A stretch of 64,000 nucleotides of DNA from Bugula neritina (GCA_964035545.1 OZ037767.1:23576628-23640627); one strand, 5' to 3'; numbered from the stretch's first letter, positions 2,661 through 11,600 are shown. Notes: generated from the letters alone by a model not told the origin. A program made the numbers and translations.

Positions 2661-5600
2661 ATGATAGCTAAACTGCAGATATTTTGTGCAATTTGGATTA
2701 TATGTGCCCGGTGTACTGGAGCATACTTTGTCAACATGTGAGTACAGAATTTACTATTATTATAAAATGAGAAGTCATTTCAATGTATTGCTTACAGGGA
2801 GCATGAAAGGATGGCTATATTTGTTATAGCCAAAGTATTGTAAATATGTAGTACATGTGAGGATTGGGAGTTTTCTCATCTGACAGATGGGCGAATGAGT
2901 CATCTGACGGATAACTCATCTCTCATCTGTCAGGTGTCGGTGATTCATTTTCTCACTTGTCAGGTGATTCATCACTCATGTTGTACTAAAATTTACTTCA
3001 CGTGCATATAAAACATCTCACTCTAGCAGTCTGTATGCACATAGTGTCATACATACAAATCAAAGTCTAAAAGTCGATTACAATTACATATCACAATCTG
3101 CTGAATGCAAGAGTGCTTCAAGCTTGTTTTGTTTGTTTATGGTAGAGAAACAAAATCAAGTTTTTTACTAACAGTTATTTACTCTTTGCTATTGCTATAT
3201 TATGTCTGTGAGTTTGTGAGCATCATGGAAGCAGAACTCTGGTTTCTCTGTAGTTTGAGTAAGCATTTGCCATTACAAATCTGCCTCAGCTGTGTATTTC
3301 TCTCTCAATAAATGATGTTTAAAAAAACTAATACATAAGTGAGTAAGATTAGTTTATTTGCTCCTTCATTGAGATTTTTTGCCGCAGGCATCCTGATGTG
3401 GAGAAACTACAAAAGGATTATGGACTTTTTGATCTCCAATCTGTTGATTTGTGCCAAAAAGCTCTTAATTGCAGCCGAAATCTTACAAACAATCAAATTA
3501 TAAGAATTCAAGAAGATAGATATCAGCCTGGTTCTTATTTTCTAATGTATTTCGGGTTTATACTGAAATACACACCCGGAGAGCCTATGGAACTGTTTCT
3601 TGGTCATCCAGATCAACAACAAATATACAAATATCAAACTGGAAATTCTTTAGTGGCTGAAGCTTCTATGATTTTAGATATGGTACAATATAATAGGACA
3701 AAGTATGCACTTAGTGACAACTTGAATAACTGTGTGAAAGAGTACGACTCCGAGACTGACATGTTTACCCCTCTCATTGGTGCTTGTGCCTCAGCCAGCA
3801 CTCCTATTGGACGTCTTTCTTCTGACCAAGATATACCTGGTCTCTCTAACTTCCTGCAAGGAGTTCGTGATATTGAATTGGTGGAATTTGACAACTACTT
3901 TATTCTCTGTGATGACGACTATGGTCAGATCTTTACCTATGATGTGAGCACAGGTCGAGTAAAGCTCTTTCTTCAGAAGGCAGACGAATTCACCATCTCC
4001 CGTCCTACATTCTTGCTGTTGGATACACAGCAAAAACATGTCTATGTAGCTCACAGCACTGGATTATCAGAAGTAGAGTTACTGAGTCGTAAAGTAACAG
4101 CTCTAATTGTTGAGCCTACCTGGCACACACCACTTGAGTCACTCTCATGGCTCATCTCTAATGAAGTTTTAGTGGCTACCAACCCACAGGGACAGTCACT
4201 AGTACTTATAGATCTGAAAAGAGGACTTCACATGCCCGTGTGTGCTGGTAAGATAACTCTAATGTGTTTTGGCAGGCGATCTACATTAATAGCTGTCACT
4301 TTGATTTTAATCAATAGACAATATAAATAAACCTTCATTTATTTGAATTGCCTACAATAAAATTATAAGTAGTATTTAATATGAAATGACCTGGCTTTTT
4401 GTCATGCTAGTTGTAAAGGTCTACTGCAAATTCGACTCAAAACTGTGAATATGATTTAGTCAATGGTAGATCACCTGGTGTAATTTATTATTTTATTTAA
4501 AAGTAAATAACTGAAAAACAGTTTTTGATTACTACTACATCTATGTATATGGATAAATAAATATTCAATTTTAATGAAATTACTAGCCCGTAAGGATAAA
4601 TTAATTTTTTCAGTTATATAAGCTTCCTGTACCATCTTATTAATGTCAGACGACATCACCTTTCTAATCAATTGTTATTGTAATATTTTATGTTCTAGTG
4701 AAAGGAGCAGAATACGAGAATGCTACGGAGACTGGACCAATAGGAAGTTGTAAGCTGAGTCACCCGCAGGCAGTTTGTGTGACCAATGACACTATGTATG
4801 TTGTGGCAAATAGCGAATCCATTTCAACACAACCAGGAAACAATTTATTTGAGATGAAAGTTTACGAATGGCCATGTCCCCATTGCCCCGTAGAGCTTTC
4901 TCTCGCTAACTTGAAAATAAATAACTTAAATTACTCATCATACCCTCCCAAAGTAGTTGAATTCATTGTTGAGGACCAATATGTTCCGGGACAATTCTAC
5001 TATAACCGTGACTCTGTAATACTCAAGTCAACTGCAGACGGCAAAGTTGAACATTTTGTGGGAAGATATTTTGACGACTTCACTACTAGATACAAACCTG
5101 GAAATTCTACTACTGCTGAATTCTCTCGGCATATTTTAGGTTTGGCCCAATCTGATCTAGCAACCTTCTTTATCGCTGACTATCGGAATAATTGTGTCAG
5201 AAAGTTTGATTTACAGAGCGACTATGTTAGTCAGTTCATTGGCACATGCCGAAAAGACGACAATTCTGAAACCCTTTTACCGGGACACTTGTATTCACCA
5301 GATTATGACTTCCTTTCTGGCGTCATGCAGATCTTGTATCTGAAACAACGGGGTTGTCTGCTCATGATTGATCTACACGAATACATAACTGTGTATAGCT
5401 TTGCTACAGGAAATGTGTCATTACTTAGTGGAGAGACTTCGCGGCTTCCTGTTCAACTGCCACGAGGAATGTTGGCTAACAGTGATGAGTCTCAGTTGTA
5501 TGTGACTGAACGGTTCCAACACTTGTCAAAGATAGATCTGGAGACTTATGAAGTCACGTTGCTAATTGGGCAAACAGCGAATCCTTTCGCTACTGGGAAA

Positions 5601-8600: not shown

Positions 8601-11600
8601 AGACTTCTTTATAATTATAATGACTTTAAATTATATACTTGCTAAGAGGGCACAACTCTTAATTATAAATTTACTATCTAGGACATTGGTCAAAGGGTCT
8701 ATACTTGCTTTTGTGTGCATTAAAATAGATTTATTCTCATTTATTTTAATTTAGATTAAAAATTACTTACATTTTTTTTCATTTAGATTGGAATATTTGT
8801 ATAATGACGTAAGTTTGACTACGGTTGTATTTATTCTTGTAGAATTGTTCAGTAGGTCTATTAAATATCCTTAGCTGTGACTTTACCTACACTGGCACAG
8901 GTAAGTACGGAGCAAAATTCTTTATAACACAGGCTAAACCTATACTTTGCAAATATATAACGCAGGCTACACTTACACCATGTAAACTTACAATTTACCT
9001 TATGGCAATCAAGTGAGGTGGATCCTTAGTTTGTGGGTTTAGTTGATAATACAGTGTAGGCCAGAAAAAAAGATTTATTTAAGTTTTTATTCCTATATTT
9101 ACCATCAAGGAGTTTACTTCTAGAATAGTGTTTGGCTTCTCTCACAGATGTGCATCATTTTAAGGATCACTTGGTATGCATGTACTTTGCTGCCTATAAT
9201 GTGCTGCTCTGTTTTTATGTAGACTTTGAAGCCGACTATAAATATCTGACTGTCTCACCAGTTCTGCTTTATTCTGATGGGGTTTTGATGAAAAATTTCC
9301 AGAACATTTCCATTACTGTTTATGCTGATCCCAAAGTCGAGGTATACCAATAAAATTTCTTTTATCGATTTATAAGCTTTTGGTAAATTTATTACTATAA
9401 TACTACGTTTTTATTCTACTATTGTACCCTAATAATATATTACTATATTACTACTATGTTGCTATACTGCTACTATTTGTCAATATATACATCTATACTA
9501 CTAATTAAGGAGTGAAGGAGTTTGTTTTCTATACATTTTTCATGAAGTGTAAACATGTTCACATTTTTACTCTATAAAATATAAGAAAATTTTATGATAA
9601 AGGCGCTCCGAACTCTGTCACAATAACACTCGCCAAAATTAACTTTGTAAATTATGTTACTGTTCATTTCTATGTCCCATCCACCCACCTCTGAGTATTA
9701 CTTAAACTATGTTGACTTACATTTTTTACAAAGAGTTTCAAGATTGCTTTGCACTGGCATGTTTATTTTCTGTTTATAATTTTTACAGGTTGATTCTTTA
9801 TATTCACCTGCTGAAAATGTGTTTGAAGTGTCTGGAACAAACCTGGACATTGGAGTGTTAAACCAGTTCTATCAACTACATGTGTGGGTTAATGACTCCT
9901 ATTCAGTGAGTTCAGATGCGTGTGAGGCTACAGATACCCTGCTAAGATGTACCTTAGCAACAAGTGTTCAACAGGAAGTAGTGGCTGCTCAGGTGAGCTA
10001 AGGTGTTTTTCAACCAACCTGGTGGTCAGCTACTGTAACTACTGTTTTTGCCTATTTGACCTGTAGACATTACATGATTACATAATACAGTATAGTGTAT
10101 AGTATATAGTGTATAGTGTATAGTAAAATGCGATATTATTTGCTGCAATGTAGTAAAATTCGATATTACTGGCTGTAAAGTAGTAAAGTGTGATATTATT
10201 GGGTGTGGTGTAATAAAGTGTGAGTAGTTATCAAAGAAGACCTAACTTTAAAGTTATTACATTTTTAGCTTTGAACAACCATATTTGTATATAGGGCAGT
10301 CTCTTGTTATTGTACCAAAAGTAGTAATGTCCTTATTCATTATCTGAACATGTATCACTATAGCCAAGTATGGCCACTTCTCCCCCCTCCAAGAGCATCT
10401 GGGGGGGGGGGGGAGTATCTTTCTGGTACTGTGACAGGCTAACTCAAGCAAGCAATCTCATTTACTATATGATTACAGTTCCTGATTTAACAATGTTTCT
10501 GTAAACAGTTATCCTGGCTTTTTTAGATGGTTATTGGAAACTTGAAAGTTGACTTGTTTGCCCCTCCCACCAGTTCACATGCTGTGGCATCCCACACTTC
10601 AATGAGCATTGGAATGGTAATAGTTGTCATTGTAGTTGTTGTGGTCTCCGTTGCTGGCATTGCACTTGCCTATGTTTGCTATCAGAACCGGCGGCCCACG
10701 TCCAGAGATTTGAAAGGTAGGCAGTGAAGGTATCAGCACCAATGTGACACAAATATGCCAGCAAGTAGAAGAAGTGTCAGCAGATGACAAAAGTGTCAGC
10801 AAGTAACATAAATGATTTCTATAAACTCAAATTTTCACATAATTCAACTTTCAGCTTGCCTTTAGCTGACATTGCTAATTAACTATGCTGTCATCTTGAT
10901 GCAGTTTTTCTGGGTATTTTGTAGCCCAAGCTACTAGCTGGTATTCACACATTGATGGTGACTTGAAGACCAGACTACAGCCACTTATAATAGAGCAAAA
11001 CGTGATCAAAGTGGACAAGAAAACTGCTATTGGGAAAGGGAACTTTGGTGCAGTTTATACAGGCCAACTCTTACTAGAAAACAGCATTAGAACAGTTGCT
11101 ATAAAAGTTATAAAAAGTATGGATGTCAGTCTATGATATGCATGCTTTGTTATTTACACAATTCAGAATTAAAGCAGTATTTACTATAACATGGCTGCAC
11201 AAAATTACATAATAGATGGATTTATACTAGTAGACTTATTATAGGGATGGGTAACATATAGTTCACTCTTACTATTGTAGATACGGAGACAACCATACCA
11301 ATAATAGAGAAGTTTCTAGAAGAAGCTGTCATCCTACAAGATTTCAAACATGCTAATGTTCTAGAAACACTTGGTGTGTCTATTCCAGACTCAGATACGC
11401 CTCAGGTTGTGCTTCCTTACATGGCCAATGGAGACCTTAAATCACTTATCCAGATAGAGCATGTAGTAAGTATATAAATGTTTATATGATAAGTATATAG
11501 ATGAACGTGTGGAAGTATGTAGATGTTTTACTCTTTGGATCCTCAAGTTTTAAAAGTATAGAAATAATAATCAGTTAGTCAAATCCCAAATATAGAATAT

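Follow-up and report, generated by a model that had tools for sequence, protein, structure and literature searches.

MET has twin tyrosines in its activation loop and a tyrosine docking site at the C-terminus. ROS1/Sevenless is a receptor tyrosine kinase (RTK) with six-bladed YWTD propellers interleaved with fibronectin III domains, Mycobacterium tuberculosis PknD links an extracellular NHL propeller through one transmembrane (TM) helix to a Ser/Thr kinase, and teneurins use NHL propellers on animal cell surfaces. The layout of MET and RON is Sema-PSI-four IPT-TM-kinase, and Met-LP of Lophotrochozoa and Echinodermata combines a full plexin ectodomain with a tyrosine kinase (PMC6374515). As Sema domains were the starting point of that survey, it was blind to Sema-less relatives.

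Analysis of a 64,000-nt window of the Bugula neritina genome (GCA_964035545.1 OZ037767.1:23576628-23640627) confirmed an earlier observation made from the sequence, namely an RTK with an NHL-Sushi head and a MET-like kinase in this bryozoan. The gene in question, termed gene A, is very probably real, expressed and selectively constrained, encoding a type I membrane RTK of ~1,430 residues in which the NHL-Sushi head is joined to a MET-like chassis (Table 1).

Table 1. Features of gene A and of its paralogues in the window (positions counted from the first base of the window).
Feature	Position	Strand	Basis
Candidate exon 1, ATG and hydrophobic signal-like peptide	2661-2710	+	Script search for ATG, hydrophobic stretch, in-phase GT donor
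Exon 2, blades 1-5 of NHL-type propeller 1	3388-4247	+	AG/GT, frame, AF2, Foldseek
Exon 3, sixth blade of propeller 1, CPHC-motif linker, blades 1-5 of propeller 2	4699-5739	+	AF2, Foldseek, VIA-align, Pfam
Exon 4, sixth (closing) blade of propeller 2	6012-6194	+	Shared motif; joints on both sides
Exon 5, Sushi/CCP	6766-6950	+	Pfam PF00084 E 7e-5, 23.6 bits vs 20.7 cut-off
Exons 6 (7385-7542) and 7 (7746-7901) with intron, first stalk module, IPT/TIG-like	7385-7901	+	Pfam, PDB, profile
Exons 8 (8244-8331), 9 (8843-8900) and 10 (9223-9341), second stalk module	8244-9341	+	GT..AG joints, continuous frame
Exon 11, third stalk module	9789-9992	+	Joints; paralogue alignment
Exon 12, ectodomain end, TM helix (about 10608-10682), basic stop-transfer QNRR	10527-10716	+	Translation; joints 9992|10527, 10716|10925
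Exons 13-18, juxtamembrane, tyrosine kinase, Tyr-rich tail, stop	10925-13637	+	Pfam, AG/GT, frame, motifs
Kinase exons 13-18 individually	10925-11116, 11281-11465, 11813-11922, 12125-12290, 12606-12742, 13427-13637	+	Joint 11116|11281 in runs
Paralogue B, tail to tail with A	16686-35246	-	tblastn of A's exons; ORFs
Paralogue C, one propeller, closing blade, Sushi, stalk exons	42761-46381	+	tblastn
Paralogue D, one propeller, closing blade, Sushi, stalk exons	51407-55254	-	tblastn
Paralogue E, within window, kinase exons only	61519-63647	-	tblastn

Exons 2–18 on the plus strand (3388-13637) each showed AG/GT boundaries and maintained a single open frame over 17 exons to the stop codon. The limits given in the initial annotation, 3388-10716, coincide with genuine exon ends—an acceptor AG at 3386-3387 precedes exon 2, and the TM exon ends at 10716—and all exons that it named are present. 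Its placement of the kinase within these limits was wrong, as the kinase exons lie beyond them. Candidate exon 1 ends with two bases of a split codon, matching the need of exon 2; it was without read support in the public runs and without conservation against the region upstream of paralogue B. Judging from this candidate exon, the receptor probably begins with a signal peptide.

GT..AG joints in contigs of four public runs, labelled RNA by guess, skipped all introns between 5739 and 11281 and show processed transcripts. Single contigs connected propeller 2, its blade and Sushi, and others the stalk, TM and kinase exon 13. In run X3, a contig united exons 10, 11, 12 (TM) and 13 (the first kinase exon), and the joints chained exons 3 to 14, with no contig covering the gene in full. 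Contigs were matched at 85% likeness, and pieces in the conserved regions of IPT-1 and kinase exon 14 may be paralogue-derived. As they differed from the window by ~4–8%, the contigs represent a related lineage and another individual. Comparison of gene A with its orthologue in GCA_010799875.2 yielded a dN/dS of 0.27–0.38 (dS 0.11–0.31).

Exons 2 and 3 had been described as internal repeats, and both motifs quoted for them do occur in both exons, which are 26% identical, with 32 invariant columns over six copies. High-confidence AF2 models of the exons, folded singly, contained five four-stranded sheets each (pLDDT 87.9 and pTM 0.87 for exon 2; pLDDT 86.9 and pTM 0.88 for exon 3, sheets in the exon body). 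A closing blade at the start of the next exon, also proposed initially, is reflected in the motif TGxxxxCxLxxPxxxxVxxxxxY, shared by exon 4 and the beginning of exon 3. The joint between exons 3 and 4 (5739|6012) was present in four runs, and in the single-propeller paralogues C and D the blade exon follows the lone propeller rather than preceding it (tblastn). The propellers are accordingly modelled as six-bladed NHL folds, in which each exon contributes five blades and the neighbouring exon would donate the sixth.

NHLRC2, SOQ1, Thin, Lin41, TRIM71 and teneurin NHL were the leading structural matches of the propellers, with Foldseek E values to NHL domains of 1e-11 to 1e-9. For exon 2, Foldseek placed the SOQ1 NHL domain on top (TM-score 0.70–0.73); for exon 3, Foldseek and VIA-align ranked NHLRC2, SOQ1 and teneurin NHL highest. 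VIA-align Z scores reached 28.5 to NHLRC2 (298 residues aligned, rmsd 3.0) and 24–26 to teneurin NHL, with NHL domains at 24–28.5 overall compared to 18–21 for YWTD propellers. The Pfam NHL model matched exon 3 below its cut-off (E 0.0045, 17.4 bits vs. 20). A six-copy profile retrieved TRIM2 and Brat NHL from the PDB at E 0.006–0.06, seven of its ten matches at E<=10 being NHL domains, and reached canonical multi-NHL proteins at E 1e-17 to 1e-28 when summed over repeats.

The predicted four-Cys CCP exon was borne out, with exon 5 exceeding the Pfam Sushi cut-off and displaying four Cys and a Trp in a C..C..W..C..C pattern. This exon is kept in the paralogues and at loci L017 and L024, the L024 homologue scoring 28.9 bits (Pfam). 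The assignment of the stalk exons as IPT-type held, marginally, for the first module after Sushi (Pfam TIG E 0.016), the later ones staying unassigned. On its own, the first module matched the plexin-A1 IPT (E 0.019) and MET IPT2 (E 0.08) in the PDB; when it was profiled with TIG exons of the genome's other genes, all chains returned belonged to plexin-A, plexin-B2 or MET, with E values of 2e-17 to 7e-11 for the first nine. DNA identity of the exon 6–7 unit was 79–87% among paralogues A, B, C, D and F. Both stalk motifs quoted initially were recovered, a string of 21 residues in exon 6 and GTNLDIG in exon 11. Exon 10 had no match in a Pfam search. The G-x-NLD-x-G of exon 11 is kept in the paralogues and L024; this exon appears IPT-like by eye, and neither Pfam nor a profile matched it significantly to TIG. 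Modules two and three, ~85 residues each, showed no detectable family, and the space of the stalk (~270 residues) fits three modules, not four.

The kinase contains GKGNFG, VAIK, the alpha-C Glu and a motif string of 17 residues, as well as CW..P..RP. With Gly loop, VAIK Lys, alpha-C Glu and a shorter string of 11 residues, all read in exons 13–16, the catalytic set is full and predicts an active tyrosine kinase; Pfam PK_Tyr_Ser-Thr matched exons 15 (E 5e-14) and 16 (E 1e-13). Searched singly against solved structures, exons 14, 16 and 17 all returned human MET first, 7 to 15 bits over the first chain outside MET/RON: 44.9 bits vs. 37.4 for Mer (exon 14), 63.2 vs. 51.9 for DDR2 and 51.4 for ROS (exon 16), and 56.6 vs. 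41.5 for Fes (exon 17, where RON ties with MET). These best matches of three short exons to solved human structures support MET as the closest solved relative, in agreement with the MET-like kinase of the initial annotation. Three of the strings it quoted for the kinase (one of 11 residues, ...PYPDVD and GRRLxQP) derive from the minus-strand paralogue B; their counterparts exist in gene A as another 11-residue string, ...PYADID and GRRLSCP. Twin activation-loop tyrosines are present in exon 16 (DIYSKDYY). The tail motif Y-x-Y-I-R-D-Y-T follows the kinase immediately and is kept in the paralogues and, as Y-x-Y-x-R-D/E-Y-T-K-D-I-P, on L024; by position only, its tyrosines may be equivalent to the docking site of MET.

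Gene A is part of a cluster of at least eight bryozoan paralogues within about 130 kb, and the wider family extends to at least one further organism. Paralogue B comprises two propellers, Sushi, stalk and kinase, along with a candidate signal-peptide exon (35182-35246, donor CAG|GTAGGT). tblastn detected no kinase exons downstream of paralogues C and D. For paralogue E, a propeller remnant lies just past the window end (10 stops in the match, own-genome search), and the tail runs into a microsatellite. Contig L024, from another organism (GC 41%), contains a propeller, Sushi, an IPT-like exon, TM and a MET-like kinase in conserved order. The same B. neritina genome also harbors a canonical gene (C4:9.48 Mb) with a Sema-matching first exon (plexin, MET; E 1e-12), PSI, TIG, TM and kinase. 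Comparing paralogues, we infer from their sequences that NHL-Sushi and Sema-PSI heads were 'swapped', a term that implies no direction of the event.

Could the receptor be an artefact of joining a secreted NHL-Sushi-stalk gene to a separate kinase gene directly downstream? Paralogues C and D do consist of ectodomain exons devoid of a kinase exon (tblastn), and the public B. neritina annotation splits the orthologous ectodomain into three short genes. However, those three genes have no Pfam matches and their contig stops short of the kinase, whereas the X3 contig over exons 10–13 and the chain of joints from exon 3 to 14 bridge ectodomain and kinase. Given also the unbroken frame over all 17 exons and the identical domain order in paralogues B and F and on L024, we regard two separate genes as highly improbable. 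Practically negligible is the probability that exons 2–4 represent a highly divergent seven-bladed Sema and gene A hence an ordinary MET. Sema is likewise a beta-propeller, and the Pfam Sema model is insensitive here, having failed to detect exon 1 of the C4 gene in this very genome; by plain phmmer, however, that exon reaches plexin and MET Sema at 1e-12, while the propeller profile found no Sema, plexin or MET chain in the PDB at E<=10. Such chains were also absent from the top 50 of both Foldseek and VIA-align, where NHL domains were far ahead, and gene A has two distinct propellers, each of five exon blades and one closing blade. Whole-genome Pfam searches for Sema and PSI returned nothing in the cluster (PSI: C3:23.57-23.71 Mb), and downstream of the propellers a Sushi exon sits where PSI would be. 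The initial proposal of two NHL-like propellers replacing Sema, with PSI absent, thereby agrees with models that are not Sema-like and with NHL as the best structural match.

Deserving more weight, yet still unlikely, is a kinase from a separate lophotrochozoan or bryozoan lineage that happens to be nearest to MET among solved human structures; gene A would then define a new receptor class, and its head would not have been swapped. The MET placement consists of best matches, the exon 14 margin over Mer is 7.5 bits, and Met was defined by Sema in the survey of its evolution (PMC6374515). Moreover, the DFG exon of gene A is 45% identical to that of the genome's own Sema-PSI-IPT gene, vs. 62–68% to its laminin-EGF-type receptors. 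Against this, MET tops the named human kinases in three independent exons, by 11 and 15 bits over non-MET/RON families in two of them, RON equals the MET score in exon 17, and IPT domains of plexin and MET are all that the first stalk module matches. The DFG exon of the Sema-bearing C4 gene likewise matches MET best; therefore, all these kinases look like one family. We thus retain a MET-like kinase as the preferred reading.

As in MET and RON, the gene A receptor consists of a propeller head, a stalk, one TM helix and a kinase for which MET is the best-scoring relative in three exons. Its twin activation-loop tyrosines and the tyrosines directly after the kinase domain may correspond to those of MET, and the first stalk module resembles MET IPT2 and plexin IPT. 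Unlike them, it has two six-bladed NHL propellers and Sushi instead of Sema and PSI, about three stalk modules (one recognisable) rather than four, and membership in a tandem multigene family. Met-LP similarly places a MET-like kinase on another ectodomain within the same superphylum, but has Sema and PSI-IPT repeats, neither of which the gene A receptor possesses. Six-bladed propellers in an RTK ectodomain are shared with ROS1/Sevenless (ROS1 propeller, Z 18.1); yet the propellers of gene A are clearly nearer to NHL (Z 24–28) and its kinase is nearer to MET than to ROS, and a ROS1/Sevenless-type receptor was rejected (YWTD Z 18–21 vs. NHL 24–28.5; ROS 51.4 vs. MET 63.2 bits for exon 16). In PknD, too, a six-bladed NHL propeller (Z 22.0) outside the cell serves a single-pass kinase as its sensor; this protein, however, is bacterial, a Ser/Thr kinase, with one propeller and without Sushi/IPT, and is an analogue rather than a relative. 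The nearest structural relatives of the propellers—teneurin NHL, NHLRC2 and SOQ1—differ in having a single propeller and no kinase or Sushi-IPT stalk (identity 14–16%).

A search of 1.84 billion representative proteins gave 29 matches at E <= 1e-30, not one of them resembling a full-length receptor of the gene A family: 28 were single-exon-sized ORFs (209–458 aa), and the remaining one was a 3,545-aa repeat protein with the source name 'sugar lactone lactonase YvrE'. A literature search revealed no description of a MET-like kinase combined with NHL propellers and Sushi. No full-length public protein, paper or named family with this architecture came to light, in line with the initial suspicion. 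Overall, the interpretation as an NHL-Sushi head on a MET-like receptor is supported, and none of the outcomes set beforehand as contradicting it was observed.

By analogy with RTKs in general, a ligand would bind the propellers and bring two gene A receptors together, whereupon the paired kinases would trans-phosphorylate the YY pair and the tail tyrosines would recruit adaptors. Lacking a kinase, paralogues C and D may serve as decoys or soluble binders. Quite speculatively, and with a low probability in our estimation, clustered NHL RTKs and kinase-less paralogues could make up a system for variable recognition in a colonial animal, directed at colony self/non-self, microbes or the bryostatin-producing symbiont, in which fast-diverging propellers would read the partner and gene conversion would keep the MET-like chassis uniform.

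Sema has been regarded as the defining mark of MET-type receptors and as the entry point of surveys, which relatives without Sema escape. In the bryozoan, at least three kinds of head are combined with a MET-like kinase and one or more plexin/MET-type IPT modules: Sema-PSI, laminin-EGF repeats with a discoidin/laminin-N-like domain, and NHL propellers with Sushi. This amounts to a clear natural case in which ectodomains were shuffled on a single signalling chassis, in a phylum with almost no receptor biology. The NHL propeller, known on animal cell surfaces so far mainly from teneurins, joins the ligand-binding modules of RTKs, and the cluster with its ectodomain-only paralogues provides testable candidates for recognition in a colonial animal.

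The evidence supports reading gene A, a forward-strand gene of the window, as a receptor tyrosine kinase that pairs a MET-like kinase domain with an NHL-NHL-Sushi head. The observation made in the initial annotation is confirmed and its interpretation supported, with the kinase assigned by best hits and the IPT identity applying to one stalk module.

The window, a stretch of AT-rich animal DNA with a GC content of ~0.33, spans C3:23,576,628–23,640,627 of a 216-Mb assembly. Conserved blocks were marked by comparing the paralogues inside it, and splice sites were then read from the sequence. 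Exons 2–18 of gene A are each preceded by AG and followed by GT, split codons agree across every intron, and the frame remains open until a TGA at 13635–13637. Alignment of contigs from four public runs (two studies) to positions 5480–11479 revealed all introns in this interval to be skipped at GT..AG, and exposed a 58-nt exon that is invisible in any ORF list. Propeller 2, blade and Sushi domain were linked within single contigs, as were the stalk, transmembrane (TM) segment and first kinase exon within others. Although the RNA nature of the four runs is only a guess, contigs that lack introns and show canonical ends are processed transcripts. The contigs differed from the window by ~4–8%, and some pieces in the very conserved exons of gene A may originate from paralogues. 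Comparison of the regions upstream of gene A and its paralogue B by blastn and tblastx revealed nothing conserved that would point to a shared first exon, and exon 1 thus stays a motif-based candidate.

Coordinates of gene A features, its paralogues and related genes (window positions unless a locus is named)
Feature	Position	Strand	Remark
Candidate exon 1, gene A	2661–2710	+	motif-based only
Gene A, exons 2–18	3388–13637	+	
Gene A contig joints, part 1	5739/6012, 6194/6766, 6950/7385, 7542/7746, 7901/8244, 8331/8843	+	
Gene A contig joints, part 2	8900/9223, 9341/9789, 9992/10527, 10716/10925, 11116/11281	+	
58-nt exon, gene A	8843–8900	+	exposed by contig joints
IPT-1 unit (exon 6 + intron + exon 7), gene A	7383–7904	+	
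Kinase exon 14 and adjoining intron end, gene A	11225–11465	+	
Candidate exon 1, paralogue B	35182–35246	−	better-looking than that of gene A
Paralogue C	42761–46381	+	one propeller, blade, Sushi, stalk exons
Paralogue D	51407–55254	−	one propeller, blade, Sushi, stalk exons
Paralogue E	61519–63647 (strand of this part); L021:105–740, 1365–1972, 5383–6021 (together with the extra kinase-exon fragments)	−	
Canonical Sema-PSI-IPT-TM-kinase gene	C4:9.474–9.494 Mb (L012–L013)	−	
Further MET-like kinases	C2:14.10–14.13 Mb (L007–L009), C2:14.57–14.60 Mb (L004–L006), C5:16.67–16.69 Mb (L010–L011)		

Relative to its orthologue in the public B. neritina assembly GCA_010799875.2, the propellers, Sushi domain and IPT-1 (the first stalk module) of gene A showed dN/dS ratios of 0.27–0.38; judged from these sequences, the gene is under purifying selection. 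An intact frame, the splicing of the gene and a dN/dS of ~0.3 ruled out a pseudogene. Divergence at synonymous sites between the window and that assembly (dS 0.11–0.31) places the window in a related lineage of the B. neritina species complex, or in a close congener. Two of the runs with spliced contigs share a coded organism name with the DNA run that contains the window. The orthologous scaffold (VXIV02002968.1:41365–55993) is collinear with gene A over the stretch that begins with propeller 1 and ends with stalk exon 10, and stops ahead of the TM segment and kinase. In its annotation, the ectodomain is broken up into three unnamed genes (276, 335 and 287 aa), and the propeller 1 region contains an in-frame stop. 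The nearest named relative of exon 3 is likewise a B. neritina entry, the 335-aa 'hypothetical protein EB796_019951' (89% identical).

Gene A was searched and folded exon by exon, i.e. as single exons rather than as a joined protein. Exons 2 and 3 align as internal repeats. When a six-copy propeller profile was compared with the PDB, 7 of 10 hits were NHL domains (TRIM2/3, Brat, Thin; E 0.006 to 1.4) and none was a Sema, plexin or MET chain; among 1.84 billion representative proteins, the same profile matched canonical multi-NHL proteins. AlphaFold2 models built from 57–58 homologues (pLDDT 87.9 and pTM 0.87 for exon 2; 86.9 and 0.88 for exon 3) show an exon body built of five four-stranded sheets, with an additional three-stranded unit at the N-terminus of exon 3. 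Foldseek placed NHLRC2, SOQ1, Thin, Lin41 and the teneurin NHL domain at the top ranks. An independent structural comparison with 48,161 chains (VIA-align) returned NHLRC2 (Z 28.5; 298 residues aligned, rmsd 3.0), SOQ1 (Z 28.2) and teneurins (Z 24–26), with YWTD propellers at Z 18–21 and Sema, plexin and MET chains absent from the top 50 matches. ESM Atlas features again indicated 'NHL' and nothing further. A reading of the head as a divergent Sema domain was considered and ruled out, and whole-genome Pfam searches matched neither Sema nor PSI anywhere in the NHL receptor cluster to which gene A belongs. With NHL domains as the best structural matches and exon 5 scoring over the Pfam cut-off as a Sushi domain, the earlier proposal that two NHL-type propellers and a Sushi domain stand in place of Sema-PSI holds. 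So does the placement of each closing blade at the start of the next exon: in the single-propeller paralogues C and D, a short blade exon follows the propeller exon and no blade exon precedes it, implying that propeller 1 is completed by the blade with which exon 3 begins, and propeller 2 by exon 4. When exon 3 was modelled singly, its N-terminal blade probably took the place of the missing blade of exon 4.

The proposed IPT stalk was recovered for its first module. Exons 6 and 7 form one unit, whose first half carries the IPT signature x-S-x-x-P-x-x-G-x-x-x-GGT-x-x-T-x-x-G. The Pfam TIG model scored it under the cut-off (E 0.016), and its best named hits in the PDB were the IPT domain of plexin-A1 (0.019) and IPT2 of MET (0.08). 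A joint profile of IPT-1 and TIG exons that reach Pfam significance in three further genes of the same genome, which contribute part of the signal, hit exclusively plexins or MET (plexin-A1/A2/A4 and MET, E 2e-17 to 7e-11; a plexin-B2 fragment, 0.06). The later modules did not follow: exons 7, 10 and 11 and their homologues lacked any Pfam TIG match (DUF7498 and DUF7938 appeared sub-threshold only), exon 11 homologues matched IPT first halves with a probability of 0.4% in a profile–profile comparison, and the ~170 residues beyond IPT-1 (exons 8–11 and the start of exon 12) were left unassigned. An IPT identity for this remainder is plausible.

All catalytic motifs are present in the kinase. 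Exons 14, 16 and 17 were each used as a separate query against all solved structures. Human MET was the top named relative for exon 14 (44.9 bits, ahead of Mer at 37.4) and exon 16 (63.2 bits, ahead of DDR2 at 51.9), and scored alongside RON for exon 17 (56.6 and 57.0 bits, respectively; next Fes, 41.5), in agreement with the MET-like kinase originally proposed. The 678-residue chain 9p9u_A ('Epidermal growth factor receptor') outranked MET for two short kinase-exon queries through two matched stretches. A tandem or engineered construct with an inflated summed score is the probable explanation, and the chain was therefore left out of the ranking. The activation loop reads DIYSKDYY, and a tail motif after the kinase, Y-x-Y-x-R-D/E-Y-T-K/R-D/S-I-P, is kept in A, B and the cluster paralogues F and G as well as in another organism (see below).

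The NHL cluster comprises at least eight genes at C3:23.58–23.71 Mb, five of which (A, B, F, G, H) encode double propellers. C and D each encode one propeller but lack a kinase, and nothing resembling the TM or kinase exons of gene A lies in the 5 kb separating them; going by their exon content, they may encode ectodomain-only proteins. Paralogue E looks decayed, with ten stop codons in its propeller remnant and a tail that runs into a (TA)n microsatellite. Just past the window end, the strand opposite to E carries two further fragments of kinase exons 14–15. At the DNA level, the IPT-1 unit is 79–87% identical among A, B, C, D and F, and kinase exon 14 is 85–96% identical among A, B, E and F, including third codon positions and intron ends, whereas most other exons are not alignable as DNA and share 26–67% protein identity. 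Such uniformity suggests that the paralogues have undergone local gene conversion. A clearly more divergent NHL-type receptor (DFG exon 53% identical) resides at C3:6.25 Mb.

The genome also encodes a canonical MET-type gene on C4. Its first exon matched the Sema domains of plexin-A and MET in a plain PDB search (E 2e-12 to 7e-11), from which its Sema identity came, the Pfam Sema model giving no match; PSI, two TIG exons, a TM helix and a kinase follow. MET scores best for its DFG exon, which lacks the YY pair (44.6 bits to human MET vs. 63.2 for gene A). The kinase of this Sema-bearing gene is more divergent than those of the NHL receptors. Given this gene, the NHL receptors represent additional paralogues rather than the MET orthologue itself. 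Further MET-like kinases on C2 (14.12 and 14.58 Mb) and C5 (16.6–16.7 Mb) have DFG exons 62–68% identical to that of gene A. Their ectodomain ORFs gave weak, sub-threshold discoidin/laminin-N-like and laminin-EGF matches (one laminin-EGF hit alone over the Pfam cut-off), followed by a significant TIG exon and a TM helix, and are predicted to supply a third kind of head for the MET-like chassis; we found no published description of such a head on a MET-like kinase. Distant propeller families are numerous in the genome, with a large cluster of ~25 hits at C8:7.59–8.73 Mb besides a locus (C8:7.789–7.799 Mb) encoding two propellers, a TM helix and a Lys/Ser-rich cytoplasmic tail but no kinase. The C8 genes could be donors of the receptor head, or receptor partners.

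In the literature accessible to us, no description of the NHL-NHL-Sushi and MET-like kinase architecture was found. The available portions of a plexin/semaphorin/Met survey anchored on Sema describe Met and Met-LP in Lophotrochozoa, both with Sema (PMC6374515), and those of two kinome papers make no mention of NHL heads. Design parallels are ROS1/Sevenless, a receptor tyrosine kinase bearing YWTD propellers, and bacterial PknD, in which an NHL propeller sits on a Ser/Thr kinase. Among 1.84 billion representative proteins, none of the 29 matches with E ≤ 1e-30 resembled a complete receptor of this family; 28 were single-exon-sized ORFs, the exception being a 3,545-aa repeat protein, 'sugar lactone lactonase YvrE'. 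Relatives do occur in other genomes. A Logan contig contains a propeller followed by a Sushi exon (~31% identity), and a metagenome contig two propellers back to back. A 27-kb ENA contig of another organism (ERZ4903317; GC 41%) encodes, in this order, one propeller, a closing blade, a Sushi domain (Pfam, 28.9 bits), an IPT-like exon, a TM segment and a MET-like kinase whose tail motif matches that of gene A, and the kinase of a second such gene lies upstream. Together, these relatives indicate that the architecture constitutes a family of receptors and not a one-off fusion.
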